Shown: piece after piece, positions 3,098 through 34,940 of the stretch
Numbering within the stretch: the first letter of the stretch is position 1
How the letters are laid out: each line of letters opens with the position of its first letter
Virus record (IMG/VR): IMGVR_UViG_3300028676_000003
Span: 124,001-188,000 of that record
DNA length: 64,000 nucleotides
Direction: 5' to 3' (one strand)
The notes under the pieces: model-generated
What the model saw: only the letters and a program-made list of their open reading frames with translations
Database searches by the model: none
What the model was told of the DNA's origin: nothing
Made by a program: the position numbers and the translations under genes

Positions 3098-5239
3098 ATG
3101 AGTTACATAATTAAAAGTACAAGTCCATTTGTTAGCATTAAGTTAACACAAAAGGGTAGAGAGTCATTAGCACAAGGGAAATTAAATTTCTCATTTTGGG
3201 CTATTGGTGATTCTGAAATAAACTACGGAAGAGAATCTATCGTCGATGCTAATCCTACTGATGTTACATTATCAGCGACTAGTATGGTTTTAAGACCGTT
3301 TGACCAACAACCAAATATAAAAACATTTATTACTCCAAGTAATAATACTGACCCATTCCAAGTAGTTAATAGTTCAGTTATAAACGTTGTAAAAGCAATT
3401 GTAAATAACCAAGCAACTGACAGAGGTTTCTTTAGTCAAAGCGGAAGTACATTTACAACACAAAGTGGTTCAACATATACTCCATATAACACAACAATAG
3501 CAAATACAGTTCTTAACGGTACTAATGTACTTGCTATGACAACAACAAATGTTGCGGTTGGTGACCTTATTATGATTAAGGTTTCAAATACAACTCTTGG
3601 TAACGTAGTTCCTTTTGAAAATGGTAGAGCAATGCCGAATCTTTGGTTCAAGGCCCAAGCAGTTAGTGTTGGTTCAGTAACTCTTGATAGAAACCTACCA
3701 AATTATTCAGCACAATCAACTCTTTCTCAAGTATTTGTTTACAGAGGTGGTGAAGTTTATAATTCAATTGCAACTGGTAGTACAGTAGCTTATTGGGATT
3801 CAGGAACTCTTGCTTTTGATTCAAACAACAGCATTACTTGTGATGATGTTCCAGTTTGGAATATGAACAATGTTTGGTGTGAAAACTTAGCTGGTATTAC
3901 TGGTCTTACTACAACAAATCTTTATGAAGACTACACCAAGTTTGGTTCATTCCCTTATTTAGGAACAAAGTACCCTTATTTGGAGTATGCGTGTGACGGA
4001 ACTGGAATAACTCAATCAACAACATTTGATTGTAACAACGCTGGTGATAGTTATTCTGATGATGTAAGCAAATCTATTAGTATTTTACACTACACAAACA
4101 ATACAATATCAAGTCTTTATGGTGAATTTTTCTATACCGATGTTGATAATGGAAAATATGTTAGAATTTCGTTACCTGACCTTATGTATCATAGAAAATC
4201 AGGTACTACTGCTAGTGGAACTAGTATGGGTATGGATTTTGTTGCTACAGGTACTACAAAATTAATTCAAAATACAGATATTCAATATTTAGATTTATAT
4301 GAGGATTCAGCTTTATTATCAAGCGGTTCAACAGCTCAAGTAGTTGGTAGGGTTTTCCCACAATTAAAAACAGTTGTTATCCATGATGATGAAATCGTGG
4401 CGGCTTCTTCTTACAAATCAAACCGTAATTGGACACTACCTGCATTGACTGCTTCATTACAGTCACCAAGTGGTGGTACTTCTACAGGTATGTTGGATGT
4501 TAACAAAACAATGTATATCACTTATAGCTTACAAAATACGCTTGCAACTGGTTTAAAATCAAGTCTTCCTTGTCAAAAATACACAAAGATTACCAACAAC
4601 ACATCATCTGCTAAGGATATTGCATTTAAAATGAGTGATACTGATTTACTTTCATTCATGCGTAAGATTGAATCAGGTTATGATGGTTATGGTTTCTATG
4701 CTGACAAATTTAAGTTGCTTTACCAAATCGTTGATGATTCTAATGATAGACCTGATGCTGGAGCTTGGAAAGAATATGATTTCACAAGTACTGCTATTAC
4801 TGGTGGAGCTGGGCAAACAATAAACCCTAAATTACTTGAAAATCAATCACCATCAACTCTTGGATTTATCCTTGATTCATTAAAGAATACAGGTGCTACA
4901 ACGTTCGATTTGATTAGCTTGTTAAACTTGCCGACTAATCTTCAACCAACAAATTTACAGTTTGGTGATGAGAGATTCTTCTATGGTAACTTATCAACTT
5001 ACATTGGTGCAACAATTTACAAAACAATCTTTGATATTAGAATAAACGCTAGTCAATTTAACTCGACTACAAACCCTTCTAGAAGCAAAGATATTACAAC
5101 AAGTCTTCCAAATATTAAGGTTAGTGAGATTGGAATTTACGATACAGATAAAAATCTTGTTTGTATTGGAAAATTATCAAATCCAGTAGCTCTTACAAAC
5201 GGAAATACAATCATGATTGAGTTAAGTTTAGATTTCTAA
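3098..5239 (+). CDS. Putative virion structural protein with tail-collar-fibre-like C-terminal domain
   Basis: N-terminal KLTQKGRESLAQG...AIGDSEINY and C-terminal SEIGIYDTDKNLVCIGKLSNPV, both paralogous to the next ORF. TATTTATT motif upstream. Confidence 0.6.
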   Translation: MSYIIKSTSPFVSIKLTQKGRESLAQGKLNFSFWAIGDSEINYGRESIVDANPTDVTLSATSMVLRPFDQQPNIKTFITPSNNTDPFQVVNSSVINVVKAIVNNQATDRGFFSQSGSTFTTQSGSTYTPYNTTIANTVLNGTNVLAMTTTNVAVGDLIMIKVSNTTLGNVVPFENGRAMPNLWFKAQAVSVGSVTLDRNLPNYSAQSTLSQVFVYRGGEVYNSIATGSTVAYWDSGTLAFDSNNSITCDDVPVWNMNNVWCENLAGITGLTTTNLYEDYTKFGSFPYLGTKYPYLEYACDGTGITQSTTFDCNNAGDSYSDDVSKSISILHYTNNTISSLYGEFFYTDVDNGKYVRISLPDLMYHRKSGTTASGTSMGMDFVATGTTKLIQNTDIQYLDLYEDSALLSSGSTAQVVGRVFPQLKTVVIHDDEIVAASSYKSNRNWTLPALTASLQSPSGGTSTGMLDVNKTMYITYSLQNTLATGLKSSLPCQKYTKITNNTSSAKDIAFKMSDTDLLSFMRKIESGYDGYGFYADKFKLLYQIVDDSNDRPDAGAWKEYDFTSTAITGGAGQTINPKLLENQSPSTLGFILDSLKNTGATTFDLISLLNLPTNLQPTNLQFGDERFFYGNLSTYIGATIYKTIFDIRINASQFNSTTNPSRSKDITTSLPNIKVSEIGIYDTDKNLVCIGKLSNPVALTNGNTIMIELSLDF

Positions 5240-20677: not shown

Positions 20678-23512
20678 ATGTCAACAAAAGTATTTGTAAG
20701 TCCTGGGGTTTATACATCAGAAAAAGACTTAACTTTTATTACACGTCAAGTAGGGGTAACTCAACTTGGTTTGGTGGGTGAGACTACAATCGGTCCAGCT
20801 TTCCAACCAATCTTCATTAGCAACTACGGTGAATTCCAATCATTCTTTGGTGGCCTAAACGCTACTAAGGTTAAAGATACTGGTGCGCCTCAATATGAAT
20901 TACCTTATATTGCCAAATCATATTTAACTCAAGCAAATCAATTATTCGTAACAAGAGTATTAGGTTTCTCAGGTTACTATGCTGGTAAAGCATGGGGTAT
21001 TACTCTTGATGCCGCTGTAGATACTACAACCGTTGCACCTACAGGTGGAAGTAACGTAGCAAACATCATAACATACTCAACAACATCTGCTGGAACAAGT
21101 ACATTTACATCGGCTAGTCCTATTGTAACTGCGCTTTTAGCTGATAACTTGATACAAGACCAATTACAATACATTTCTTTATTGAATGTAGGTCAAACAG
21201 GTAGTGTTACAACAACATTTATTAAAACTGGAAACTCATTTACTGGTGCTTCATTCAACTATATCATTACCGCTACTGGTAGTACTGGTAGTACTTTAAC
21301 AGGTGTTGCTTCAGGTGTAACTGTAACTTATTCAGGTACAGGTTATACAGATGTTGAAAACCAATTGGTTGCGTTATTACGTTCAAGAGGTACAACAGAC
21401 TTAGCTACACAATTTCCAGCATTTGAGGTAACTGGTGCTACTGGTGTTATCTTCGACCCAGCATTTACTGATTCTGAAATGAATCCATTAGGAGATTTCT
21501 CTTTAAGTGGTTTCTCTCAAACTCAAGGTGCTTTTGATAACTTGGTATCTTTAGATAGAACTAAAAAGAATTACTTACCAAGAGTTCTTGGTAGAAGCGT
21601 TCAAAATGGTAATACACCATTATACCTTGAAGAATTCTACAACAGTATGTTCGAAGAACTTGTTGCTGAAGGAAAAGTAAGAGGACTTAAACAAACAATC
21701 GTTAGTTATAATAATGAATTCTCTGATTACCAACAACAATACTCGCCAGCGGTTACACCTTATGTTGTATCTGAGTTACGTGGTACAAAGGTGTTGAAAT
21801 TATTCAGATTCCATACAATTTCTGATGGTAATGCGGCTAATGAGCAATTCAAAATCTCATTCGTTAACATTAAACCTGATACAAGAGAGTTTGACGTAAT
21901 CATTAGAAGCTACTACGATAGTGATGCTTCACCAACAGTATTAGAAAGCTTTAGCCGTTGTACAATGGACCCAAATTCTAATAACTATATTGGTAGAAGA
22001 ATTGGTACACTTGATGGTTTATATCCTTCTAAATCAACTTACGTTCTTATAGAAATGGATGATACATCTGATACAAGTGATGCATTCCCAGCTGGTTTCA
22101 TTGGATTCCCAATTAGAGACTACCAAGAGAATAGCAACACAAGTGTTGTAGCTCCAAAATTAACATACAAAACTGCTTATGGTGCTTTTGAAAACAAACG
22201 TAAATTCTATTTAGGTTTATCTGAGACAATTGGTATTGATGCTGATTTCTTCGATTACAAAGGTGTACCACAAACAAATAATCCAAACGTTTGGACTGGA
22301 ATGACTAACGGTTTCCACATGGATATCGATGCTACTGGTGCAACAATTGACAACGTTAACGTTGTTATAAATACTTCAGGTGGAACTTACTCTCCTATAT
22401 TCTTATTCGACACAGGTGATGCTGAGTTTAGAACTGAATCAGGACTTGCTGGTGGACCATATGAAAAAATCTACGCTCGTAAATTTACATTCGCACCTTA
22501 TGGTGGATTTGATGGATGGGATGTTTACAGAACTAGAAGAAGTAATCTTGATAGCTACATAATCAATGGTACCAACGGTGCTAACGGTTTAACTTCAGGT
22601 GCATTTAGTAACAAAGCTTTATCTAATGGAGACATGGGTATTACATCTGATTACTATGCGTTTTTAGAGGCTATTTGGACATTCAGAAACCCTGAAGCGA
22701 TTAACATTAACGTGTTTGCTACACCTGGGATTGATAATTTCGATAATACTAACTTAATTGAAGATACTATCGAGATGATTGAAGAAGAAAGAGCGGATTC
22801 ACTTTACATCATGACAACACCTGATTTAAACACTGGTGGAGATGTGATGAGTGTTGAAGATGTTACTGACTATTTAGATGGTATGTACGATAGTAACTAT
22901 TCTTGTACATATTGGCCTTGGGTACAAATCAACGATACTGAAAATAACGTGTTTATCTACGTTCCACCAACAAGAGATGTTGTAAGAAATATTGCCTTAA
23001 CTGATAATGTTTCATTCCCTTGGTTTGCGGTTGCGGGTATTCAACGTGGTGATGTTGATGCGGTTCAAGCTAGAAAGAAATTAACACTTTCTGAAAGAGA
23101 TGAATTGTATGAAAACAGAATTAATCCGATTGCTACATTTACATCTGATGGTATCAAAATTTGGGGTAATAAAACACTTCAAGTTAGAGAATCTGCTCTT
23201 AATAGAATCAACGTAAGAAGACTTTTATTACAAGCAAGAAAACTTATCTCTGCTGTATCTATTAGATTGTTATTTGAACAAAATGATAACGTGGTTAGAA
23301 ACCAATTCTTATCTATAGTTACTCCTATCTTGGATAACATTAGAAGCGAAAGAGGTTTAACAGATTTCCGTGTGGTTCTTTCAAACGACCCTGAAGATAT
23401 CGACAGAAACCAATTAACTGGTCAAATATTCTTGAAACCAACAAGAGCCCTAGAATTTATTCAATTAGAGTTCGTAATCATGAATACAGGTGCTTCATTT
23501 GATAATGTATAA
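20678..23512 (+). CDS. Tail sheath protein (T4 gp18-like)
   Basis: N-terminal VSPGVYTSEKD. C-terminal YWPW, VPPT, PWFAVAG.QRG, LYENRINPI, IWGNKTL, RINVRRL, KPTRALEFI. Confidence 0.95.
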   Translation: MSTKVFVSPGVYTSEKDLTFITRQVGVTQLGLVGETTIGPAFQPIFISNYGEFQSFFGGLNATKVKDTGAPQYELPYIAKSYLTQANQLFVTRVLGFSGYYAGKAWGITLDAAVDTTTVAPTGGSNVANIITYSTTSAGTSTFTSASPIVTALLADNLIQDQLQYISLLNVGQTGSVTTTFIKTGNSFTGASFNYIITATGSTGSTLTGVASGVTVTYSGTGYTDVENQLVALLRSRGTTDLATQFPAFEVTGATGVIFDPAFTDSEMNPLGDFSLSGFSQTQGAFDNLVSLDRTKKNYLPRVLGRSVQNGNTPLYLEEFYNSMFEELVAEGKVRGLKQTIVSYNNEFSDYQQQYSPAVTPYVVSELRGTKVLKLFRFHTISDGNAANEQFKISFVNIKPDTREFDVIIRSYYDSDASPTVLESFSRCTMDPNSNNYIGRRIGTLDGLYPSKSTYVLIEMDDTSDTSDAFPAGFIGFPIRDYQENSNTSVVAPKLTYKTAYGAFENKRKFYLGLSETIGIDADFFDYKGVPQTNNPNVWTGMTNGFHMDIDATGATIDNVNVVINTSGGTYSPIFLFDTGDAEFRTESGLAGGPYEKIYARKFTFAPYGGFDGWDVYRTRRSNLDSYIINGTNGANGLTSGAFSNKALSNGDMGITSDYYAFLEAIWTFRNPEAININVFATPGIDNFDNTNLIEDTIEMIEEERADSLYIMTTPDLNTGGDVMSVEDVTDYLDGMYDSNYSCTYWPWVQINDTENNVFIYVPPTRDVVRNIALTDNVSFPWFAVAGIQRGDVDAVQARKKLTLSERDELYENRINPIATFTSDGIKIWGNKTLQVRESALNRINVRRLLLQARKLISAVSIRLLFEQNDNVVRNQFLSIVTPILDNIRSERGLTDFRVVLSNDPEDIDRNQLTGQIFLKPTRALEFIQLEFVIMNTGASFDNV

Positions 23513-24042: not shown

Positions 24043-24531
24043 ATGGCTGATTTATTGATGAAAATGCCCCTACCATACGAACCTAAGAAAAAGAATCGTT
24101 GGTTAATTACTTTCCCAGCAGACCTAGGAATCCAACAATGGTGGTTAGCTTCTGCTTCAAGACCTTCAATCACACAAAATGAGGTTGAAATTCCGTTCCT
24201 TAATACTTCTACATGGGTAATCGGTAGATTTACTTGGGAAGCTATTGATGTTACTTTCCGTGACCCAATAGGGCCATCTGCAACACAAGCTATCATGGAG
24301 TGGGTTCGTCTTCACTCTGAATCTATCACAGGTCGTCAAGGTTATGCGGCAGGTTATAAAAGACCAGTTGAACTTGAGATGCTTGACCCAACAGGTGTAG
24401 TTATTGAAAAATGGCTTCTTGATGGAACGATGCTTACAAACGTTGGATTTGGTGACTTATCTATGGATGATGATGGTATCGCTGAGATTACAGCAACTCT
24501 TAGATTTGATAGAGCAATCTTATTATTCTAA
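24043..24531 (+). CDS. Tail tube protein (T4 gp19-like)
   Basis: YEPKKKNRW, ASRPSIT, GRFTWEAIDVTFRD, LEMLDPTG.VIEKWLL, TLRFDRA. 162 aa, follows the sheath. Confidence 0.9.
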   Translation: MADLLMKMPLPYEPKKKNRWLITFPADLGIQQWWLASASRPSITQNEVEIPFLNTSTWVIGRFTWEAIDVTFRDPIGPSATQAIMEWVRLHSESITGRQGYAAGYKRPVELEMLDPTGVVIEKWLLDGTMLTNVGFGDLSMDDDGIAEITATLRFDRAILLF

Positions 24532-24547
24532 TTTAAAACAAAACTTA

Positions 24548-24967
24548 TTAAAATGCCTCGTCTGAGGCATTTTTTTTGTTTATATGTGTCATTATTTGTT
24601 TTTCAATATCACGATAATCGGCCGCTTGCTGATACTCTTGCAGACTTACATGATAAATCTTAAGTTCATAGACTTGCTTATGAATTTGTAAAAGAAATTT
24701 ATATAAATCATCATGTGTTTCATACATCTTGTTTAAATCATCAATTAGTGTCTCTGTTCTGAATGGAAAAACACTAAATTCTTCAAACTTGCTTTTTTCT
24801 TTGATTATTTTGCCAATAGCCTCATTTACCTTTTTTTTACTAATTGCAAAAATACTAGAAACACTTTGAATGAAACCTTTATCAATAACTGCGATATAAC
24901 CTTCACCAACGCTTATTTTTATTTTTTCTAACTCATTAGAAATGTAGTCTTTAATAATTTCATCCAT
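24548..24967 (-). CDS. Hypothetical protein with C-terminal UVR (UvrB/UvrC)-like motif
   Basis: LQEYQQAADYRDIEKQI resembles the UVR consensus (E-x-Y-E-x-A-A-x-x-R-D). Has its own host-type promoter. Confidence 0.6.
   Translation of the reverse strand: MDEIIKDYISNELEKIKISVGEGYIAVIDKGFIQSVSSIFAISKKKVNEAIGKIIKEKSKFEEFSVFPFRTETLIDDLNKMYETHDDLYKFLLQIHKQVYELKIYHVSLQEYQQAADYRDIEKQIMTHINKKNASDEAF
24550..24577. terminator. Bidirectional terminator after the tube gene (overlaps the 3' end of the antisense ORF)
   Basis: AAAATGCCTC-GTCT-GAGGCATTTT followed by T run. Confidence 0.8.
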
Positions 24968-25001: not shown

Positions 25002-25068
25002 GCTATTTACAAAAAAATTTAAATTTCTATATTTATTTTTATACATAATAATTTAAACACGTTTCATA

Positions 25069-26334
25069 ATGGATAGAAAACCAAATGTTGTTCCAACAAA
25101 AGAACAAATAAATTCAGTTAAATCTGAAAAAGAAAAAAAAGAACTTTACGAACAAGAAAAAGCTCTAGCAACAAATGAAATCTACTCGGCTTCATTTAGA
25201 GAAGCTGAAATGCCGACAGGTCAATTATCTGCCATTGAGCAAATGCAACAACGTACAGCACATCAATTAAATCTTAACGCACAAGGAATGCAAGTTAAAG
25301 ATGAAACTTTAGCTGAAGCACCTACTTATAGTGATGTCGCAAGATTTCGTAACGAAGAACAAATGAGACTTCGTGATGTGCAATTACAACAAAATCTAGA
25401 TAATATACAAAAGTTTCAAGACCAAACCGCTGAGGCTACAGTAAGACACCAATCTTACCAAAATCAACAACAAAAACCAATCATGGAAATCGACAACGGA
25501 TATCAAAAACCACCAACTCCACCTGTAACACCAAAAAACGGTAGCATTTGGGACGACTATTCTAACCAAAGTAGTGATGAACACATCAACGAAATTAGTC
25601 AACCAAACTATAACGCTCCTTTTGATGTAATTTCATTACCATCGTTAGGAAAAACTTATAAAAATAAGAAATCTAACATCAAGTTAAGTTATATGACAAC
25701 TGCTGATGAGAACATTCTTTCAAGTCCTAACTTATTACAAAGTGGTGAGTTTCTTGAGATTCTTATCAATAGAAAAATGCTTGAACCAAGCCTTAGATAT
25801 AAGGATTTATTGCCTGGGGACAGGAACGCTATTATGATTTGGTTAAGAGCTACTGGTTACGGTGAAATGTACCCTGTTGTTATCGAAGATGAGAAAGGAA
25901 TTCCATTTGAAACTGTTGTTAATTTAGATGACTTAAAAACGGTAGAATTAACGGTTGAGCCTGATGAAAATGGACTTTTCACGTTTGATTTACCATTAGC
26001 TAGACAAACCATCAAGTTCAGATTATTAACTTGTGGTGAAATTGATTTCTTGGACAAGAAAATGGAAGAAGAAAAAGAGAATAACGTTTTAATTAACAAT
26101 TATAATACTTACAAATTAGAGAGAATGATTGTTGAAGTTGATGGGTCTAAGGATAGAACTTTTATTTCTAGCGTTGCTAACAATATGAGACTACCTGATT
26201 CAAAAAAACTAACGGAATTTATGAACACAATTGATTGTGGGATTGACTTGGATATTGTTGTTAAGACTCCTGGGGGTGGGTCTGTAGCCACCTTTCTTCC
26301 ACTTAACCTCAACTTTTTTTGGCCTAACCTCTAA
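25069..26334 (+). CDS. Baseplate-hub/tail assembly chaperone (T4 gp26-like) with Gln/Glu-rich N-terminal extension
   Basis: FDVISLPSLGK, YMTTADENIL, DLLPGDRNAIMIWLRATGYG, ends FFWPNL. Lies between tube and tape measure. Confidence 0.65.
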   Translation: MDRKPNVVPTKEQINSVKSEKEKKELYEQEKALATNEIYSASFREAEMPTGQLSAIEQMQQRTAHQLNLNAQGMQVKDETLAEAPTYSDVARFRNEEQMRLRDVQLQQNLDNIQKFQDQTAEATVRHQSYQNQQQKPIMEIDNGYQKPPTPPVTPKNGSIWDDYSNQSSDEHINEISQPNYNAPFDVISLPSLGKTYKNKKSNIKLSYMTTADENILSSPNLLQSGEFLEILINRKMLEPSLRYKDLLPGDRNAIMIWLRATGYGEMYPVVIEDEKGIPFETVVNLDDLKTVELTVEPDENGLFTFDLPLARQTIKFRLLTCGEIDFLDKKMEEEKENNVLINNYNTYKLERMIVEVDGSKDRTFISSVANNMRLPDSKKLTEFMNTIDCGIDLDIVVKTPGGGSVATFLPLNLNFFWPNL

Positions 26335-26599
26335 TTATAAAGTTCCGTTACTAGAAGAAATTTATATTTGCACACAATATTTAAAAGGTTTTACGTATAA
26401 TGATGTTTTAAGTATGCCTGTTTATGAAAGAAGATTCTTTTTAGGGTTATTGAATAAAGAAAACTTTGAAAAACAGGAAAAAATTGAAGAAATGAAGGAG
26501 CAAAGTAAAACTACTGGCTCAAAAGGTACTAGAACAACCAAAATCAGCGGACAGAATCTTAAAAATAGGATGAACAACGGTGATTTACCATTATCATAA
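26314..26599 (+). CDS. Frameshift extension of the chaperone (gp51/tail-chaperone GT-like); ORF track lists only 26414-26599
   Basis: The +1 frame is open from 26288 with no ATG until 26414. It reads FFGLTSNYKVPLLEEIYICTQYLKGFTYNDVLSMPVYERRFF from the T7 run at 26314-26320. Confidence 0.6.
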
Positions 26600-26601
26600 C
26601 T

Positions 26602-26632
26602 AAAAATGCCCGCAGAAATGTGGGTATTTTTT
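26602..26632 (+). terminator. Intrinsic terminator after the chaperone pair
   Basis: AAAAATGCCCGC-AGAAAT-GTGGGTATTTTT, with G-U pairs. Confidence 0.7.
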
Positions 26633-26665
26633 ATTTAATATGATATTTATAAACAAAGATTAATC

Positions 26666-28144
26666 ATGAATAATAAAAAACTTAAGATAACTGAAGCACA
26701 ATACAATAGACTACTACAGTTTATTGTTGAAACTCCTTTTGACACAATGGTTAAACAAAGTATCGATATAGGTGATGTTGTTTCTATTAATTGGAAAGGT
26801 AGTAAGAATAATTTCAAGGTAATTGATAATTCAGGTGGGCAAATCATTATGGATAACATCGATAAAGGTTCAACCAACATCAACAATAGATACTTCATGA
26901 GCTTTACATCGTTGAATGGTGATGACCTAGAGATGAGAAAGGTAAACAAGGTTAAAGAACCTGAAAAACTTAACGATATCAAGTCATGGTCACCAGTAAC
27001 TGTTAAAGATATTTCAAACATACAAATCTTCAGAGACGGTGAATTAATTGATACGGTTGACCCAGTTTCTCCTACTGCTGAAAAACAACAAAAAAATGGT
27101 CCAAAACCTGATACAAACACAGATAATAACCCAAGTCCTGACTTCATGAATGAGGTTAATAACGACTTGGCTATTATTCTTGAACAATTGGAAAAAGGAA
27201 AAGGAATCAATTTTATATTTAATTCAGGGTTTATTAATTTCTGTTGCTTAGATAGAGTTGATTCTACATTTATCTTAGAAATTAATGAAGAACAAAATAC
27301 AATCATCGATAGTCTTAATAAATGGGACACCTTCATTTTGGATATCAAGGGTAATCCTCAAACAGATAACCTATATCTTAAAAACAAAGACATTGTTTCA
27401 ACTAATGATGGAGTAACTTATAACCTTAAATTCAAGGTTTCAGCTGGAAATACACACAAAGAGACTGTTATAAAAGCAATCAAAGGTGTTAGTGTTTTGA
27501 GCTCTTGTGATACAACTGAAGAAGATGAAGATGAGAAACCTGAAGTAAATGGCCCTGAAGAACAGAAAGCGGATGCTGAAAAGGCACTACAAATGATTCT
27601 TAAGGATAAAGATTTACAAGATGCGTTTTATAAACAACCTGGATTTTGGGAGATGTTTAAAGCTGAACTTTCAGGTGAAAAAGCTGTTGGTACTGGTATA
27701 ATTACCGTATTAGACGTTATGCGTAAAGTAACTGAATCTAGACTTGTTAAAAAGGTAGGTAAAGGGTTTAATGTTGGTAAAAAAGCCAAGTTTATTCCTA
27801 TTGAAAACGTTAACGTTAAGTATCGTGATGATAAAGATATAATCCATAATTATGACCTTCCAATGGTTGAAGATATGATTACGGTTAGAAGACACCTTAT
27901 CGATGATGTTAGTCAAGTTTTACAAAAAAGAGTTGAGGGTGGAAATGGACTAATTCTAAGAATCCTAGTTAAAGACCAAACAGACGAACCAAATATCAAG
28001 AATTGTGATGTTCAGATTGGTATTAAAAATAAAAGCGATAAATTCGTTGAGAAGGGACAAACATCAGATGTTAACATAAAATTCTTAAATTCAGAAGGTT
28101 ATGAAGCACAAGTTCAACAACCACAAACACAAAATACTAACTAA
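26666..28144 (+). CDS. Hypothetical protein (492 aa) with KLKITxxQY N-terminal motif
   Basis: TATTTATA 14 nt upstream. SH3/KOW-like IDIGDVVSINWKG segment. Stop overlaps the tape-measure start. Confidence 0.65.
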   Translation: MNNKKLKITEAQYNRLLQFIVETPFDTMVKQSIDIGDVVSINWKGSKNNFKVIDNSGGQIIMDNIDKGSTNINNRYFMSFTSLNGDDLEMRKVNKVKEPEKLNDIKSWSPVTVKDISNIQIFRDGELIDTVDPVSPTAEKQQKNGPKPDTNTDNNPSPDFMNEVNNDLAIILEQLEKGKGINFIFNSGFINFCCLDRVDSTFILEINEEQNTIIDSLNKWDTFILDIKGNPQTDNLYLKNKDIVSTNDGVTYNLKFKVSAGNTHKETVIKAIKGVSVLSSCDTTEEDEDEKPEVNGPEEQKADAEKALQMILKDKDLQDAFYKQPGFWEMFKAELSGEKAVGTGIITVLDVMRKVTESRLVKKVGKGFNVGKKAKFIPIENVNVKYRDDKDIIHNYDLPMVEDMITVRRHLIDDVSQVLQKRVEGGNGLILRILVKDQTDEPNIKNCDVQIGIKNKSDKFVEKGQTSDVNIKFLNSEGYEAQVQQPQTQNTN

Positions 28145-30633
28145 TGGCAGATACATCAAATATGAGTCAAGACGAGTTAAATGCGCATAACAGATTAGTC
28201 GCAGAGGCTCTTAAACTCGCAAAACAAGAAGCTAGATATAGAAAAGAAGTTAGCACCAGTCTTGCTGATTATTTAGCTGGTGTTGAGAAGGCAAATAAGA
28301 TGAAAAAAACTTATAATGCCAACTTAAAAATTCAATCTAAATTTGAGAAAGAATTAGAAAAAGCACAGCAAGATAATGATGCTCAAGCTATTCTTAATGC
28401 TCAAGTTAAGCTAGACCTTATAAAGAAACAAAATAAAGAACTTAAGAAACAACAAGAAGCTCTAGAAGACGCTTTGGCAACTGTTAATAAGACTTCTATG
28501 GTTACTGCCAAGTTAGGTGCTGAAGCTTTAAAAGGTATCGCAAAGCTTGCAACAAACATCCCAGGTCTTATCACCAAGGGTTACGGTCAAATCAAGAGTG
28601 CTGGTTTATTCGATATGGATAAAGCCATTAAGCAATCAGGTTTAAGTATGGGTCTTTTATCTAAACAAACTAGTGATTATAGAGCTAATATTACTGCGGC
28701 CGCTAAAAGAACAACTACCTTTGGTATTGGAATTGAAGAACTTGCTCAAATGCAAGCTAGTTATTCTGAAGAATTAGGTAGAGCTGTTGTTTTAACTGAA
28801 CAAGAAAGCGTTGCTATGGCTAAGATTGCCGCTGATGCTCAATTGAGTACCGAAGCAATGGGTCAAATGACTGCTGAATTAGATAGACAAGGTGTTTCTG
28901 CTGAAAGAACTGCTGACTATATTCACAAGGTTATGGAAGACACCCATAAAATGGGTCTTAATTCATCTAAGGTTATTAAGAATATCAATGCTAATTTCAA
29001 GATGCTTAATAGATATAACTTCAAAAATGGAGTTGATGGACTAGCTAAAATGGCCCAAACAGTATCTAAATTAGGTGTTTCTATGGAATTTGCCGCTGGT
29101 TTTGCAGATAAGTTATGGGATGTTGAAGGAGCTGTTGATATGTCTGCACAATTACAAGTATTAGGTGGTGAATGGTCTAAGTTAGCGGACCCATTCAAGC
29201 TTATGTATCAAGCTCGTAATGATATTGAAGGATTGACTGAAGAATTAGGTAAAGCCGCATCGGCTTCTGCTCACTTGAATAAAAAAGGTGAAATAGAAAT
29301 TGCCGCTGTTGAAATGCATAAATTAAAAATCATTGCTCAACAAACTGGTGTTGCATATGATGAGTTAGCTCAAGCTGGTAAAAATGCATTCAAGTTGAAT
29401 AAGATTAAAGGTCAAGTTCAATTCCAAATGTCTGATGAAGAAAAAGAATTCCTTACAAATCAAGCTCACTTAGATAAAGACGGAAAAGCCTATATCGTAG
29501 TTAAAGGTGATAAGAAATTCCTTGGACAATTAGGAGCTAATGCTCAAAGTATTGTTAAGGCCCAAATGGAAGAACAAAAAGCTATGGGTGAAAGAGCTAA
29601 GGATGCTCAAACATTTGATGAGGCGTTGAATAATACAATCAACGGTATGAAGGTTTATTTGCTTCCAATCATTACAGCTATAAACGAAAAATTACTTCCT
29701 AAATTGAAAGATTTTGGTGATAGATTCGAAAACGAAAAATGGGGTGATAAAATAGAGAAATTTGCTGGTATTGTTGGTGACTTGGTTACTACCATCGGTG
29801 GATTTATTATTGATAACCCAATCAAAACTGGTCTTATTTATCTTACAACTAAATTAGGTGGTTTCCTTATGGATAAAGCTACTTGGTTTAGTAATGGTCT
29901 TATACTTGCACAAGGATTTAACGCTGGGTCTGCTGGTGGTGGAGCCGCAAGTGCTGTAGCTGGTGGTGTCGGTAAATTTGCTAAGTTAGGTAAGTTTGCT
30001 AAGATTGGTGGTGGTGTAATTGCCGCTGGTGCTAGTGGATATGATGAATGGACAACCAATAAAGAAAATGGAGTTGAAGCTGGTGAAAACGCTGGCCGTA
30101 CTGCTATTAGAGCAGGGGGTGCTGGTTTAGGAGCATGGGGTGGTGCGGCCGCAGGTGCCGCATTGGGTTCTGTTGTTCCAGTTATCGGTACAGTTGTTGG
30201 TGGGATTATTGGTGGTATCTTAGGTGGACTTGCTGGTGATAAACTAGGTGATATGGGTGGTGATGCCGCTTATGGTGTTCACGATGGTAAATTCCCTGCA
30301 ATTGGTAAGAACTTAGGTAGCGATTTTTCTCAAGGTAGAGGAATTATTCAAGGTGGAAAAATTACACCTATTGATAATAAAGATGACCTTATGGCAATGA
30401 AACGTGGTGGTCCAGTCGATAATGCGTTGAGAGATGGTGGTGGAAGTGTGAACACTACTAGAGTTGATTTTGGTTCTATTACAATCAATGGTGAAATCTT
30501 GATTAAATCTCCTGGAAGTCCAGGTATGTCTGAAGACCTTATGAAGGACCCTTCATTTAGACGTGATATCACAAGAACAATCCAAGTTGAATTAGAGAAA
30601 AATAAAATTGGTGGAAAAAATAAAGGTCAATAA
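28144..30633 (+). CDS. Tail tape measure protein
   Basis: 829 aa, Ala/Lys/Glu-rich helical sequence with Gly-rich hydrophobic C-terminal segments, downstream of tube and chaperones. Confidence 0.8.
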   Translation: MADTSNMSQDELNAHNRLVAEALKLAKQEARYRKEVSTSLADYLAGVEKANKMKKTYNANLKIQSKFEKELEKAQQDNDAQAILNAQVKLDLIKKQNKELKKQQEALEDALATVNKTSMVTAKLGAEALKGIAKLATNIPGLITKGYGQIKSAGLFDMDKAIKQSGLSMGLLSKQTSDYRANITAAAKRTTTFGIGIEELAQMQASYSEELGRAVVLTEQESVAMAKIAADAQLSTEAMGQMTAELDRQGVSAERTADYIHKVMEDTHKMGLNSSKVIKNINANFKMLNRYNFKNGVDGLAKMAQTVSKLGVSMEFAAGFADKLWDVEGAVDMSAQLQVLGGEWSKLADPFKLMYQARNDIEGLTEELGKAASASAHLNKKGEIEIAAVEMHKLKIIAQQTGVAYDELAQAGKNAFKLNKIKGQVQFQMSDEEKEFLTNQAHLDKDGKAYIVVKGDKKFLGQLGANAQSIVKAQMEEQKAMGERAKDAQTFDEALNNTINGMKVYLLPIITAINEKLLPKLKDFGDRFENEKWGDKIEKFAGIVGDLVTTIGGFIIDNPIKTGLIYLTTKLGGFLMDKATWFSNGLILAQGFNAGSAGGGAASAVAGGVGKFAKLGKFAKIGGGVIAAGASGYDEWTTNKENGVEAGENAGRTAIRAGGAGLGAWGGAAAGAALGSVVPVIGTVVGGIIGGILGGLAGDKLGDMGGDAAYGVHDGKFPAIGKNLGSDFSQGRGIIQGGKITPIDNKDDLMAMKRGGPVDNALRDGGGSVNTTRVDFGSITINGEILIKSPGSPGMSEDLMKDPSFRRDITRTIQVELEKNKIGGKNKGQ

Positions 30634-30914: not shown

Positions 30915-33900
30915 ATGCAAAATTTTTATAACTCTTCTAAACCAAGTCCTACTACTAGAAACACTATTAACAGTGTAAGTATAGATATTAGAGATTATCT
31001 TTTAACGAAGAATTTAAAACCACAATACCCACAATTATCAACGACACTTAACGGTGCTCCTAAGATTGGTGAACCAGTTGTTGATACAACTATTGGTGAG
31101 AACGCTGTATTGGTTCCAATTGGTCTTCCATTGGAAACCGAAGGTATTTCATTTAAAAATAAGAACATCTCAACTAATCAATTTAAAAATGATGTTCAAA
31201 TTGCTGATGAACTTAAGAACATTGACCTATCAACGAAAGATGTAAATAAAGACTACCCTCAAGCAGTTTGGCCTCAAGGAACACAAAAATATCCTAATTC
31301 AGCTACTGAAGAAGTTACAAAGTATGGACTTATTGGAAAAACAGATGAAGCAGGATATCGTAAAAGAAATACAATCAAGAACTTATATCTAGATGCTGAT
31401 AAACAAATAGATATTTCAACTTTCATTGATTTAAACCCTACAGATACTACTCAACAAATAAAAGGATATTTAGACACTTATGGTGGTTTAAATACTGGAA
31501 ATGGTGGAGCAACAAAAGCAATCAATATCATTGGTAGCGTACTAAACGGACAAGGTTTAGGTATAGCTAAGGGTGGTGTTGTGACTAACTATGATGTTAG
31601 AGCAACGTTAGTTGGTAGAGTTCTTGGAGCAACAGGTTTCATCAACGATACAAAGCTTGGAACAATCGGTGGACAGCAATTAGCACTAGCATTGGCAAAC
31701 AATGCGGCATTTAATGTTCAACAAGATATTTTAGGGTCCTTCAATGTTACTGATAACATGATGAGCCTTGTTAAAAATGGTACACTTGCTGGATTTAGGT
31801 CAGATTATACTATTACAAAACCTTCAAGTACAGGTGGACAAATTGCTGATTATACTTCAAGAATCCTAGGATTCACACTACCTAAGAGTTATTTAGATGA
31901 TTCAGGGTCTATTTTCCAAAGTGAAAATAACAACGCTGAAAATGTAACTAGAGCCAACGCAATGATTCTAAATACTGGTAAGGGTCAAAATCAAGCCCTT
32001 TTAACGAACGTTAATGCGAATTTGATAGGGATTAGTCCATCAGGTATAGATAATCCTTCTAACTCGTCATTTAGGGTTGGTTATGCACCAGCATATACAA
32101 ACAACAACGGTGAGGTACAAATTACCAATGGAGTTATCTATGCTTTCTCAAATCAAGGTAAAACAATATCTCTATTTGGTTCAGACGATAATATCATTCC
32201 AAACTTGTCTTATAACAGAGAACAAAAGGTTCAAGCTTCAGGTTTTGAGGCTCCTGAAGACTTATTCTTTGTAGGACACAAATCAAACCCAGGTTATTCT
32301 GACCGTAAAATCAGTGACGTTACCTTCTCATGGGGTACTGAGATTGGTGGTAAGGTAAATTCAGATGCTAATTATTATCCATTTAGTGGTGATAAGAAAA
32401 GTCTTCTTGCTAAAACTCAAAAGCTTTTCAACAGTAAAGGTATGTTGAATATCGTTACAGCCAAAGGTGATATGGACAAGACTTCAACACAAATACAACA
32501 AGCTAACGGTAATGGTTTCTCTAAGGGTAGCCAAGTACTTAAAGCTGATTTATACGATGATAATGGACGTTATAACAACGCAACTGGTAAAACAGCTGAC
32601 GAAACATATTGCCGTAGTTGGACTACGCTTGACAGATATGATTCTGTTAATAATCTTATTAGAAAACACGGACTTTGGAAATCTCCAACGGTTCCATATA
32701 GATTCAATACTGAAAACTCAGTATTAGATGAGTATGGAATACCTAAGATTGCACCATATACAACAGATAAACCTGAAGACCCTAAGAAATTTATGTTCTC
32801 AATTGAGAACTTAGCTTGGGCCGATGAGAGTTCATATGCAAACCTACCACAATCAGAACGTGGACCAGGAGACCTTATCTCAGGTAAAAGAGGTCGTATC
32901 ATGTGGTTCCCGCCTTATAATATTAATTTCACAGAAAATAGTAGTGTAAATTGGGATTCTAATAATTTCATTGGTCGTGGAGAACCATTATACACATACA
33001 ATAACACCGAAAGAACAGGTACACTTTCTTTCCAAGTAATTGTTGACCATCCTAGTTATGCAAATTCATTTAGAGGTGTTAACGGACCCGATGATAACTA
33101 TATTGCTTCATTTTGGGCTGGATGTGTTGACCCTAGTAGTGAAATATCTAAAAAATTAACACCAAGTCAAGTAAGTTCACTTGTAGTTGAGTCTTTAACG
33201 GTTCAAGAACCTAAAAAGATTACTAGTGAGCCAACACCTGATGATATGGTTGTTTATTTCCCTAATGATAATGCTAATATTCCAGCAACATATGAAAATG
33301 GGTTAAGTGGTGCAACAACTGCTAATACAATCAATTATAATGTATCTGCAACTGGTTTAGGTTTCGGATTAGGCTCTTATCCAAGTAACTTCACCCCAGG
33401 TGTCACAAGTGCTTGGCCTGATAGATATAACTTCGGTTTAAACTACAAAGGTGAAAGAGCTCCTGTTTCTAATGTTGATGGTGTGCCTTATTATGGTTAT
33501 TTTGACCCAAGATACGACCAAGCTATTGTTAATTTCTTGAATACCAAGTGTAAGTATTGTGTAGTTGAGGTAACTGGTTATGCCAGCCCACAAGGTTCTG
33601 CACCATATAATCAAAAATTAGCTAACGCTAGAGCCAAGGCTATCCGTGATGAGTTAAGAGATACGAAATGGGGACCATTATTAACAGATAAAAGAAATTT
33701 TGATAAGAGATTTAAAACAATGCCAAGCATCGCTTTGACAAATACTCAGTGTATTCCTAACCATGGTGAAGATACTGATACTATTTGGTGTAAATTAGAT
33801 AGAAAAGCTGTTATTCATTTCAGATTTAGTCCTGAATTAGCAGCGGCCGACTATGCGAAAGCAACACCTGTTATTAAAAAATCATCTAAAACTGTTAATA

Positions 33901-34940
33901 CGCTTATAACAAATAAATTCTATGATGAATCTAAGTATTTTGACCAATTGGTTAATGATGATGCTTTTGTTTTTGATAGATTTAGAGATAAAATTAAGTA
34001 TTTTCACCCAGCGTTCCACTCAACAACACCTGAAGGGTTGAATTCTAGACTTACATTCTTATTGCAATGTACAAGACAAGGACCAACTTCAGAGGACCAA
34101 GGGGCAAATAACTTGGCATTCGGTAGACCGCCAGTTTGTATTTTAAGAATTGGAGATTTTTATAATACTAAGATTGTAATCGATAATATTGGAATTGATT
34201 ATGAGCCGTTGGTATGGGATTTAAACCCTGAAGGTATTGGAGTTCAGCCAATGATTGCGAATGTTAACATGTCGTTTAAATTTATCGGTGGTTCAACACT
34301 TATGGGTCCAATCAACAAGTTACAAAATGCGTTATCATTTAACTATTTCGCTAATACACAAGTGTATGACCCAAGAGCTGATTATATTGCTAAGACAGAT
34401 TTAACTGTTACTAAAAAATATAAAAAGAGTGATGGAACTGAAGTATCAGAAACAAACCCTGTTTATAAAATTAGCAATGGACAAGTTGATATTTCAAATC
34501 CTGAAACTGCGATTACACCTGATGTTATTGCTGATAATACACCTGAAGTAAATCAAACAGCGGCCGCAGAGCAAGCAATTAGTGGAACAACAGCACAAGA
34601 TGCTCAACCGCCAGCGGGTACATCGGCTACAACTAACAATGACATTTATGTTTATGTTACTGGTGATAGAACAACAGATGCTTATAATGGAACAATTGAT
34701 ATTAAATTGGTAACACCAGCACTGGCTGATTCTTACGATATGAAGGTTAGCATTTTTGATGCAACAAATAAGAGAGTTGAAATAGGTGTTGGACGTGTTG
34801 ATAAAACCAAGATGGAACAATCATACACTTATCCAATAAACCTAACAAGTAGTAACTTTAAGTTTTCTACAACAAATGCATATGTGATTAGAATCGATTT
34901 TATCGGTTACAAATCATTTAATATAACAAAAGAATTTTAA
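30915..34940 (+). CDS. Baseplate/tail-tube-initiator-like protein (gp48/gp54-like domains) with internal OmpA-like domain
   Basis: Two tube-like segments (WFPPYNINFTENSSVNW...GRGEPLYTY; GRPPVCILRIGDFYNTK) flank VEVTGYASPQG...YNQKLANARAKAIRDEL. Confidence 0.55.
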   Translation: MQNFYNSSKPSPTTRNTINSVSIDIRDYLLTKNLKPQYPQLSTTLNGAPKIGEPVVDTTIGENAVLVPIGLPLETEGISFKNKNISTNQFKNDVQIADELKNIDLSTKDVNKDYPQAVWPQGTQKYPNSATEEVTKYGLIGKTDEAGYRKRNTIKNLYLDADKQIDISTFIDLNPTDTTQQIKGYLDTYGGLNTGNGGATKAINIIGSVLNGQGLGIAKGGVVTNYDVRATLVGRVLGATGFINDTKLGTIGGQQLALALANNAAFNVQQDILGSFNVTDNMMSLVKNGTLAGFRSDYTITKPSSTGGQIADYTSRILGFTLPKSYLDDSGSIFQSENNNAENVTRANAMILNTGKGQNQALLTNVNANLIGISPSGIDNPSNSSFRVGYAPAYTNNNGEVQITNGVIYAFSNQGKTISLFGSDDNIIPNLSYNREQKVQASGFEAPEDLFFVGHKSNPGYSDRKISDVTFSWGTEIGGKVNSDANYYPFSGDKKSLLAKTQKLFNSKGMLNIVTAKGDMDKTSTQIQQANGNGFSKGSQVLKADLYDDNGRYNNATGKTADETYCRSWTTLDRYDSVNNLIRKHGLWKSPTVPYRFNTENSVLDEYGIPKIAPYTTDKPEDPKKFMFSIENLAWADESSYANLPQSERGPGDLISGKRGRIMWFPPYNINFTENSSVNWDSNNFIGRGEPLYTYNNTERTGTLSFQVIVDHPSYANSFRGVNGPDDNYIASFWAGCVDPSSEISKKLTPSQVSSLVVESLTVQEPKKITSEPTPDDMVVYFPNDNANIPATYENGLSGATTANTINYNVSATGLGFGLGSYPSNFTPGVTSAWPDRYNFGLNYKGERAPVSNVDGVPYYGYFDPRYDQAIVNFLNTKCKYCVVEVTGYASPQGSAPYNQKLANARAKAIRDELRDTKWGPLLTDKRNFDKRFKTMPSIALTNTQCIPNHGEDTDTIWCKLDRKAVIHFRFSPELAAADYAKATPVIKKSSKTVNTLITNKFYDESKYFDQLVNDDAFVFDRFRDKIKYFHPAFHSTTPEGLNSRLTFLLQCTRQGPTSEDQGANNLAFGRPPVCILRIGDFYNTKIVIDNIGIDYEPLVWDLNPEGIGVQPMIANVNMSFKFIGGSTLMGPINKLQNALSFNYFANTQVYDPRADYIAKTDLTVTKKYKKSDGTEVSETNPVYKISNGQVDISNPETAITPDVIADNTPEVNQTAAAEQAISGTTAQDAQPPAGTSATTNNDIYVYVTGDRTTDAYNGTIDIKLVTPALADSYDMKVSIFDATNKRVEIGVGRVDKTKMEQSYTYPINLTSSNFKFSTTNAYVIRIDFIGYKSFNITKEF

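Follow-up and report, generated by a model that had tools for sequence, protein, structure and literature searches.

A conserved two-frame layout in gp26/gp51-type tail chaperone genes of phages points to a G/GT-like protein pair made by +1 frameshifting on UUU-pyrimidine

Here we describe a gene in a 64,000-nucleotide stretch of a jumbo phage genome (the window; positions 124,001 to 188,000 of IMG/VR record IMGVR_UViG_3300028676_000003) that very probably has two products of unequal length, the longer one arising from a +1 slip at a stretch of uridines near its 3' end. The gene encodes a member of the family to which the phage T4 proteins gp26 and gp51 belong, and an open reading frame (ORF) in the +1 frame overlaps its end. 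We have high confidence that a recoding event joins the two frames into a fusion product, and it seems likely to us, judging from sequence comparison, that this event is ribosomal +1 slippage and that the two products form a chaperone pair like gpG and gpGT of phage λ. The slip appears very probably to be a device common to hundreds of related phages.

According to the model that we favour, most ribosomes would read straight through the site and make a 421-aa short form ending in FFWPNL. A minority would shift by +1, when the peptidyl-tRNA-Phe (anticodon GAA) on a UUU of the sequence U UUU UUU (26314-26320) re-pairs with the UUU one base downstream; decoding would then resume at GGC 26321 and add 92 residues to the first 417, giving a predicted long form of 509 aa (...NLNFF-GLTSNYKV...). 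The tape measure protein would be held by the gp26-like domain common to both forms. The extension, which is helical and equivalent to the C-terminal tail of T4 gp51, may recruit another tail component, e.g. the tube or the hub. In T4 and some other phages both products would come from two paralogous genes instead. What we show is the anatomy of the sequence, the membership in the family and the conservation both of the two-frame arrangement and of the slip-prone site. We infer the slip, its direction, its efficiency and the chaperone function from sequence comparison, and the way in which the chaperones might act by analogy.

Organization of the locus

The source of the window is a 368,549-bp jumbo phage record from a peat metagenome with 33.6% G+C. 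The frame-0 ORF encodes a protein with the C-terminal residues LPLNLNFFWPNL, and positions 26311-26334 read AAC TTT TTT TGG CCT AAC CTC TAA. The +1 frame is uninterrupted from 26288, just after a TAG at 26285-26287, to a TAA at 26597-26599; its translation is PPFFHLTSTFFGLTSNYKVPLLEEIYICTQYLKGFTYNDVLSMPVYERRFF..., which across the shift site reads ...FFGLTSNYKVPLLEEIYICTQYLKGFTYNDVLSMPVYERRFF..., and its earliest ATG, GTG or TTG is the ATG at 26414. The end of the 421-aa ORF, the run of seven T (T7), the open +1 frame and its late first start are thus all present as the original prediction, made from the letters of the window, had described them. A promoter-like site and a terminator-like hairpin, the latter one of four such hairpins found in the region vs 0.5 expected from shuffled sequences, flank the 421-aa ORF and the +1 ORF as one unit (Table 1).

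The arrangement exceeds chance: of the 426 ORFs in the entire 368.5-kb sequence, five carry an in-phase TTT TTT Y within their last 15 codons, and among these five only the chaperone ORF also has a +1 frame that stays open for at least 60 codons past the stop. The 421-aa protein and a profile of the extension each match a single locus in the genome, and therefore the phage has no separate gene for the long form. A search of the same genome with the Pfam family PF12322 gave zero matches and missed even the known locus, which makes it uninformative.

A sequencing error in the homopolymer, or decay into a pseudogene, might have split what was once a single ORF: homopolymer runs are error-prone, and one T fewer would fuse the two frames. 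This explanation is effectively refuted by the recurrence of the same +1 offset in more than 80 independent assemblies and eight isolate genomes, and by the conservation of the frame-0 tail (WPxx-stop) itself. Moreover, a strain from another study, which is 90-95% identical and was assembled independently, covers positions 26249-26715 and has the T7 run without any indel, so that the run is not an assembly error. Within the extension this strain has two substitutions, at 26395 (upstream of the ATG) and at 26575, and each of them hits the third base of a +1-frame codon.

Conservation of the two-frame layout

By tblastn, homologues of the gene with 27-33% identity were identified in three phages (Microcystis phage Mel-JY01, Flavobacterium phage immuto and an uncultured phage of 484 kb), each time with a homologous extension in the +1 frame. 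A scan of IMG/VR gave 571 relatives, of which 80 loci with 28-68% identity were examined; junctions were counted in 83 loci in which the junction was readable, and the frequency of TTT TTT in 81 dereplicated loci. The extension is in the +1 frame in 83/83 IMG/VR-type loci. All but one of the 83 have the form YUU-YUN-NNN-CCN with a frame-0 stop one to four codons after (F/L)(F/L)xP, and in those 82 the +1 frame runs through the site without a stop and codes for a homologous segment of 46-114 aa; locus L050 is a minor variant with FFRA. The consensus of the segment is FFxL(T/S/P)xxY(K/R)..L.EEI(F/Y)......G(F/Y)....(V/I)..MP...R+(F/Y). The same layout occurs in the isolates immuto, Mel-JY01, SP-15, HSE3 and GXN1 and in LR756508, and a hidden Markov model (HMM) of the extension matches the +1 frame of SP-15 (E 2e-9), HSE3 (2e-9) and GXN1 (1e-6), the other frames giving values of 0.8 or more.

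The predicted long form is absent from the annotation of every isolate looked at (immuto, Mel-JY01, SP-15, HSE3, GXN1, Atu_ph07 and XacN1): none of these records fuses the extension to the upstream 'baseplate hub' gene, and the extension is listed as a tiny hypothetical protein in all of them save GXN1, where it is unannotated. One could take these entries at face value and suppose that the window holds two independent genes, a 61-aa protein being made from the ATG at 26414 and the fusion never being formed; the ATG exists, and small ORFs of this kind have been annotated in relatives, both in GenBank records and by gene-calling programs (Table 1). However, the conserved segment begins at the FF site, 31 codons upstream of this ATG, and the part that precedes it (LLEEIY...GFTYxD in the window), together with the T run, is conserved at the protein level in the aligned homologues, which is the outcome that the original prediction had called for. 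The ATG codes for the M of an MP motif, a position at which other loci have L, F, I or W, so that it is not a conserved start. In 34/82 loci the segment has no start before it, the first start of the +1 frame lying 25-184 nt downstream of the site or being absent, as in one locus that has none at all. From the site to the MP motif, the +1 frame is free of stops in every relative compared.

Gene calls in protein collections point the same way. The extension profile matches 1,870 clusters among 1.84 billion representative proteins, and nearly all of these are ORF calls of 56-130 aa in which the match begins at profile position 1; the called ORFs start at scattered, incidental TTG or GTG codons a few residues before that position. 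With natural single-ORF fusions in some genomes and the loss of the slippery run exactly where the long form has its own gene, both described below, we regard two independent genes as highly improbable, slightly more so than the -2 shift considered below.

The shift site and the direction of the shift

Within 160 nt of context aligned from 80 loci, the 12-nt TTTTTTTGGCCT contains the most conserved positions. The site reads TTT TTT TGG CCN in 56 loci, TTT TTT CGN CCN in 12, TTT TTT TAY CCT in 10, TTT CTT TGG CCT in two, and CTT TTT TGG CCT and TTT CTA TTC CCT in one each; in the isolates SP-15 it is GAA TTT TTT CAC and in HSE3 and GXN1 GAR TTC TTT CGT CCC, where a single UUU followed by C is the sole shift-prone element. 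TTT TTT is present in 77/81 loci, where the codon usage of the rest of these genes would predict 63%, an excess that we read as selection on the site. T7 is thus the commonest form of the putative site, not an obligatory one. Every +1 locus, including those that lack a T run, holds at least one of UUU-U, UUU-C and CUU-U, as is needed for a +1 slip in the P site by tRNA-Phe(GAA) or, on the model of RF2, by tRNA-Leu; +1 shifting is well established at CUU_U and UUU_U (PMC5009743). The element shared across loci is UUU-Y, rarely CUU-U. The original prediction had proposed that tRNA-Phe slips on UUU-UUU-U before a Trp codon, and of this the slip-prone UUU holds. The heptamer and the Trp codon turn out not to be essential: UGG, UAY and CGN all occur as the following codon, and the essential element would be UUU-Y.

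The same prediction had left the direction open between +1 and -2, and the homologues now favour +1. In a -2 event, as has been proposed for phage Mu, the product would be ...NLNFFF-GLTS..., 510 aa long, and on U7 a tRNA-Phe can indeed re-pair two bases back. At the sites TTT CTT TGG, TTT CTA TTC and TTC TTT CGT of homologues, however, no -2 re-pairing is available; these sites permit only +1 re-pairing, from UUU to UUC or from CUU to UUU, and for this reason +1 is to be preferred. A second reason is that naturally fused forms match the length of the +1 product: the fused proteins P0194 and P0239 show the spacing P-x4-FF-(G/N)-L and have, counting from the P anchor, two and not three hydrophobic residues before G/N-L. 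A +1 slip would fit every locus with the +1 layout and a -2 shift would not; we consider the latter very unlikely.

It could also be RNA polymerase rather than the ribosome that slips. If the polymerase stuttered on the A7 template, a fraction of the mRNA would carry U6 and direct the synthesis of the same 509-aa form. Slippage on homopolymers is known to express overlapping bacterial frames (PMC5009743). T7 is found in 66/83 +1 loci and T6 in most of the others, and for homologues with the extension in the -1 frame (see below), which also have T6, one extra U would suffice. Polymerase slippage would not be expected, however, in HSE3 and GXN1 (TTC TTT CGT), in immuto and locus L082 (TTT CTT TGG) or in LR756508 (TTT CTA TTC), all of which hold the +1 layout with runs of just three T. 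The base after UUU is, moreover, always a pyrimidine, a regularity that is relevant to re-pairing of a tRNA and not to a polymerase. Seven T is also at the low end of the run lengths on which bacterial RNA polymerases slip, which counts against this explanation. T7 is also what contigs from an RNA library show, but contigs conceal minor variants and therefore do not bear on the question. Taken together, we judge transcriptional slippage to be unlikely, although it is the most credible of the alternatives considered here, and we retain +1 slippage of the ribosome as the preferred explanation.

Two jumbo phages of Proteobacteria refine this picture. In Agrobacterium phage Atu_ph07 the site is CAT TTT TTC GCA, which contains U UUU UUC, and the extension lies in the -1 frame (E 1e-4); in Xanthomonas phage XacN1 the site is TTT TTT A, and the extension is again in the -1 frame (E 2e-4). 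These two relatives would shift by -1 instead of +1, and because of them we suggest that the two-product design is conserved and that the direction of the shift varies, as it does in G/GT.

ARAGORN made 62 tRNA calls for the phage, including three tRNA-Phe(GAA) and one tRNA-Trp(CCA); among the 62 there is no quadruplet-decoding tRNA and no tRNA with an AAA anticodon that could read UUUU. The calls are located at genome positions 224978-302525 and 49566-49639, outside the window. They include a tRNA with a CUA anticodon at 228804-228879, which is amber-reading and labelled 'Pyl' by ARAGORN, and another, at 281534-281619, whose anticodon loop '(agga)' has 8 nt; three others have 6-nt loops.

Natural two-gene loci

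Among the best 150 matches to the extension profile, six are single ORFs of 308-331 aa in which a gp26-type domain runs into the extension, and immediately upstream of each stands a further PF12322 gene, which encodes 261-289 aa. The C-terminus of these short paralogues is (F/L)(F/L/M)WP plus three to five residues, like the frame-0 product of the window. Their tail codons are TTC TTC, TTA TTT, TTT ATG, TTC TTT, TTC TTC and TTC TTG, with no T6 or T7 run in any of the six, and in the fused long forms FFGL is coded by TTC TTC GGA. TTT TTT is therefore present in 77/81 frameshift loci vs 0/6 two-gene loci (Fisher p 4e-7, a value that ignores relatedness), and this contrast is the basis for proposing that genes retain the slippery run as long as they depend on a frameshift and lose it otherwise. 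The short product and the long one appear to be required alike.

Protein family and fold

The assignment to a gp26/gp51-type module, which the original prediction had made by inspection, is borne out by profile searches. The window protein matches phrog_150 ('baseplate hub') with an E-value of 2.9e-9 over profile positions 13-219 of 282, and a construct of the fusion does so with 1.1e-9; PF12322 (T4_baseplate) matches the window protein with E 2.5e-4 and an aligned relative with 2e-15. phrog_150 holds both T4 proteins, gp26 at positions 14-235 and gp51 at 13-280, and the fusion product of the window aligns with it up to position 237, just beyond the slip. Comparison of the fusion family with the gp51 family by hhalign gave E 1.2e-5 and a probability of 81%, with the alignment colinear to gp51 residue 248, and the extension alone aligned with gp51 residues 224-248 with E 0.01 vs 0.19 for a reversed control. 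No significance was reached by BLASTP of the extension against T4 gp51, and the family HMM scored just 0-3 bits against the single gp26 and gp51 sequences of T4, though the alignments were colinear; since both methods are too weak at this distance, profile-profile comparison was needed.

An AlphaFold2 model of the natural long form P0194, a relative and not the window protein itself, has a predicted local distance difference test score (pLDDT) of 95 and a predicted template modelling score (pTM) of 0.90, and its extension consists of three helices. This model matches BFVD models labelled 'baseplate hub subunit / hub assembly protein, T4-like' with E-values of 7.5e-19 to 1e-7 and template modelling (TM) scores of up to 0.86. 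A structure-only VIA-align search of 48,161 PDB chains ranked the uncharacterised 3fgx first (Z 6.1), YqbN, which we take to be an XkdN-type tail assembly chaperone, second (3klu, Z 5.2) and the HK97 tail assembly chaperone third (2ob9, Z 4.7), and all three align on the N-terminal ~100 residues (8-100 or so). Foldseek gave nothing significant against PDB and AFDB/Swiss-Prot, with 2ob9 at E 1.8 and probability 0.28. As judged from the model, the N-terminal fold weakly resembles known tail assembly chaperones.

A four-cysteine zinc ribbon (CxxC...CxxC) is present in T4 gp26 and gp51, in LR756508 and in the natural long forms, P0194 among them, and is missing from the window protein, Mel-JY01 and immuto (alignment A1). 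This is a clade-level loss, and the ribbon is not part of Pfam's definition of PF12322. Separately, the Pfam family DUF6760 gives sub-threshold matches to four of eight extensions (those of the window, L005, L018 and L026; E 0.004-0.04) over the EI...MP...R core, which may reflect a distant link to an uncharacterised family; for homologues of gp51, PF28602 is listed.

Points that weigh against the proposed +1 slip and chaperone pair

Several observations speak against the interpretation given here, either in part or as a whole. The codons that would stand in the A site are all sense codons, namely UGG (59), UAY (10), CGN (12) and UUC (1). No Shine–Dalgarno-like motif is conserved upstream, a loose purine-rich match within 22 nt being present in 27/80 loci, and downstream RNA structure is not general (mean z -0.46). 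A 'hungry codon' pause is not evident either, because genes for tRNA-Trp and for three tRNA-Phe are present in the phage genome. On T7, the +1 frame could also be entered by slippage of the polymerase or by a shift of -2. Phylogenetic relatedness is ignored in the p-values, among them the value of about 1e-11 from a binomial test of 77/81 against the expected 63%. The PF12322 score of the window protein, 21.2 bits, is under the gathering score of 24.5 bits. For the proposed chaperone function, the grounds are synteny, what is published on T4, and Z-scores that are modest (<8) and not decisive. Finally, a complex prediction for the tube protein and the extension scored 0.00 and gave no verdict, and it counts neither way.

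Gene neighbourhood

The genes around the chaperone gene are those of a myovirus tail module, in the order sheath, tube, chaperone, 492-aa ORF, tape measure and 1341-aa ORF, the last with an OmpA-family domain of the peptidoglycan-binding type (Table 1). The extra gene between chaperone and tape measure, which had also been recognized in the original prediction, has 31-46% identity in the closest jumbo relatives (L005, L007 and L010) and zero matches in Pfam, PHROGs and Atlas. Smaller relatives are without it, and in them the tape measure gene comes straight after the chaperone gene. The two genes adjoin directly in SP-15, HSE3, immuto and many IMG/VR loci, sometimes with a small ORF between them; an exception is Atu_ph07, in which the gene is not beside the tape measure gene. 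The chaperone is 358-450 aa long in the relatives L005-L017 vs ~250 aa elsewhere. The tube and chaperone genes are separated by an ORF of 139 aa on the opposite strand, with a bidirectional terminator-like hairpin where its 3' end meets that of the tube gene.

Table 1. Features of the chaperone locus and its surroundings, with positions of extension pieces in relatives
Feature	Sequence	Position	Strand	Remarks
Sheath gene	Window	20678-23512		Context
Tail tube gene	Window	24043..24531	+	phrog_4542, E 2.6e-25
139-aa ORF	Window	24548-24967	-	Between tube and chaperone genes
Bidirectional terminator-like hairpin	Window	24550-24573		
Promoter-like TTTACA-16-TATATT	Window	25006..25033	+	Upstream of chaperone gene; consensus match only, and the consensus may not be the host's
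Frame-0 ORF, short form, 421 aa	Window	25069..26334	+	Ends ...NFFWPNL*
Q/N-rich N-terminal addition, ~180 aa	Window	25069..25620	+	Specific to jumbo clade L005-L017; without family match
T4 gp26/gp51-type domain, residues ~185-421	Window	25621..26319	+	PF12322, phrog_150; common to short and predicted long forms
Putative shift site AAC UUU UUU UGG CCU	Window	26311..26325	+	T7 at 26314-26320; proposed resumption at GGC 26321
Frame-0 tail of short form, W P N L and TAA stop	Window	26320..26334	+	Same tail type as in the short paralogues of the two-gene loci
+1-frame extension, 92 aa and stop, GLTSNYKVPLLEEIY...MPVYERRFF...	Window	26321..26599	+	Homologous in 73 aligned loci
ATG, M of conserved MP motif	Window	26414..26416	+	Internal position; not a conserved start
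Terminator-like hairpin followed by T run	Window	26602..26631	+	Directly 3' of the +1 ORF stop
492-aa ORF between chaperone and tape measure	Window	26666..28144	+	Conserved in L005, L007, L010
Tape measure protein gene	Window	28144..30633	+	phrog_167, E 7.7e-18
1341-aa ORF downstream of tape measure	Window	30915-34940		OmpA-family domain, residues 871-917, E 3e-6
GenBank small hypothetical protein covering a piece of the extension	Mel-JY01 (L001)	4740-4976		
GenBank small hypothetical protein covering a piece of the extension	immuto (L002)	4833-4943		
GenBank small hypothetical protein covering a piece of the extension	L088	3406-3528		
GenBank small hypothetical protein covering a piece of the extension	L089	3364-3546		
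GenBank small hypothetical protein covering a piece of the extension	SP-15 (L090)	3249-3368		
GenBank small hypothetical protein covering a piece of the extension	HSE3 (L091)	3231-3401		
-1-frame extension, Atu_ph07	L088	3283-3525		Jumbo phage of Proteobacteria
-1-frame extension, XacN1	L089	3286-3543		Jumbo phage of Proteobacteria

Comparison with known systems

The closest parallel is the G/GT system of λ, in which gpG and gpGT are encoded by two overlapping ORFs between the tail tube and tape measure genes; the direction of the shift depends on the lineage, being mostly -1, with -2 in Mu and +1 in HSTV-2 (Xu, Hendrix & Duda 2004, summarised in PMC5009743). The window gene likewise lies between tube and tape measure genes, the 3' end of its first ORF is overlapped by another that has no start of its own and is conserved as protein from the overlap onward, and the proposed products are a short protein and a rarer long one with a common N-terminal domain, in a layout that is conserved beyond sequence. 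There are, however, also clear differences. The shift in the window would be +1 on UUU-Y, whereas that of λ is -1 on an X XXY YYZ heptamer; within the family described here, U UUU UUC with a -1 frame is found only in Atu_ph07. The proteins are PF12322 members of ~250 aa, many of them with an inserted zinc ribbon, whereas the Phage_TAC family has ~110-140 aa, and the resemblance in fold to gpG-type chaperones is weak (Z 4.7-5.2). In the jumbo clade of the window, the 492-aa gene separates the chaperone from the tape measure.

Reviews of T4 describe gp26 and gp51 as hub assembly chaperones, and gp51 as essential and absent from the virion (PMC3004832). As to sequence, gp26 (208 aa) ends ...GLKEFFELL* at the profile position of the slip site and is without extension, like the short form, and gp51 (249 aa) continues ...DEIFTFYQ... 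(EIF...MIPAERGF) colinear with the +1 extension, like the long form. The T4 tape measure protein, gp29, is itself a component of the hub. T4 differs in that the two proteins come from diverged and divergently transcribed paralogous genes without a frameshift, and in that sequence identity to the window protein is below significance in BLASTP and in single-sequence HMM searches. Because gp26 ends at the slip and gp51 continues into the extension, T4 appears to represent the pair in two-gene form, much as the six tandem pairs from metagenomes do, and the comparison suggests that T4 genes 26 and 51 are a two-gene counterpart of a G/GT frameshift pair. T4 also has an internal in-frame product, 26' (L004 7803-8090), of 95 aa with the C-terminus of gp26.

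With regard to the mechanism, the RF2 gene prfB offers a precedent, since it uses +1 slippage in the P site at CUU_U or UUU_U, and UUU-pyrimidine sites are known from e.g. E. coli argI (Fu & Parker 1994, cited in PMC5009743). In both cases a peptidyl-tRNA on YUU would re-pair with UUY one base downstream, and CUU_U itself occurs in two to three of the chaperone homologues. Unlike prfB, the chaperone site has neither a stop codon in the A site nor a conserved upstream Shine–Dalgarno-like stimulator, and it would not be autoregulatory. Listeria phage PSA uses +1 frameshifts in cps and tsh at CCC_UGA (PMC5009743), which are likewise programmed shifts that give C-terminally extended phage structural or assembly proteins; they differ in that a Pro codon precedes a stop and in that the genes, for capsid and tail shaft, encode virion components of other protein families.

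We found no report of frameshifting in gp26/gp51-family genes in the full-text literature, the PRFect paper or a 2016 recoding review, a survey whose coverage left subscription journals largely outside. What appears to be new here is the G/GT principle in a different protein family and with a +1 UUU-Y site, although an earlier description is possible.

Significance

Frameshifting of the G-T type has been described as conserved in long-tailed phages 'except T4' (PMC5009743). We lean slightly towards a broader view, in which the PF12322 proteins would be the G/GT-type chaperones of T4-like and many jumbo myoviruses, with a stimulator-poor +1 shift on UUU-Y as the ancestral and commonest mode (>1,800 clusters) and T4 genes 26 and 51 as a pair that has been split into two genes. 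If this is true, the T4 lineage would be no exception to G/GT; most of its relatives would use the +1 version, which T4 would have split into 26 and 51. It would also give a concrete function to the essential T4 proteins gp26 and gp51, which have so far been known just as 'hub assembly chaperones'. Furthermore, the family would provide natural +1 sites of the UUU-Y type by the hundred, with stimulators not obvious, plus -1 and two-gene variants of the same gene, and such variants are material for the study of what sets the direction and the efficiency of a frameshift. Among viruses of prokaryotes, few natural families that use programmed +1 frameshifting would then be as large.

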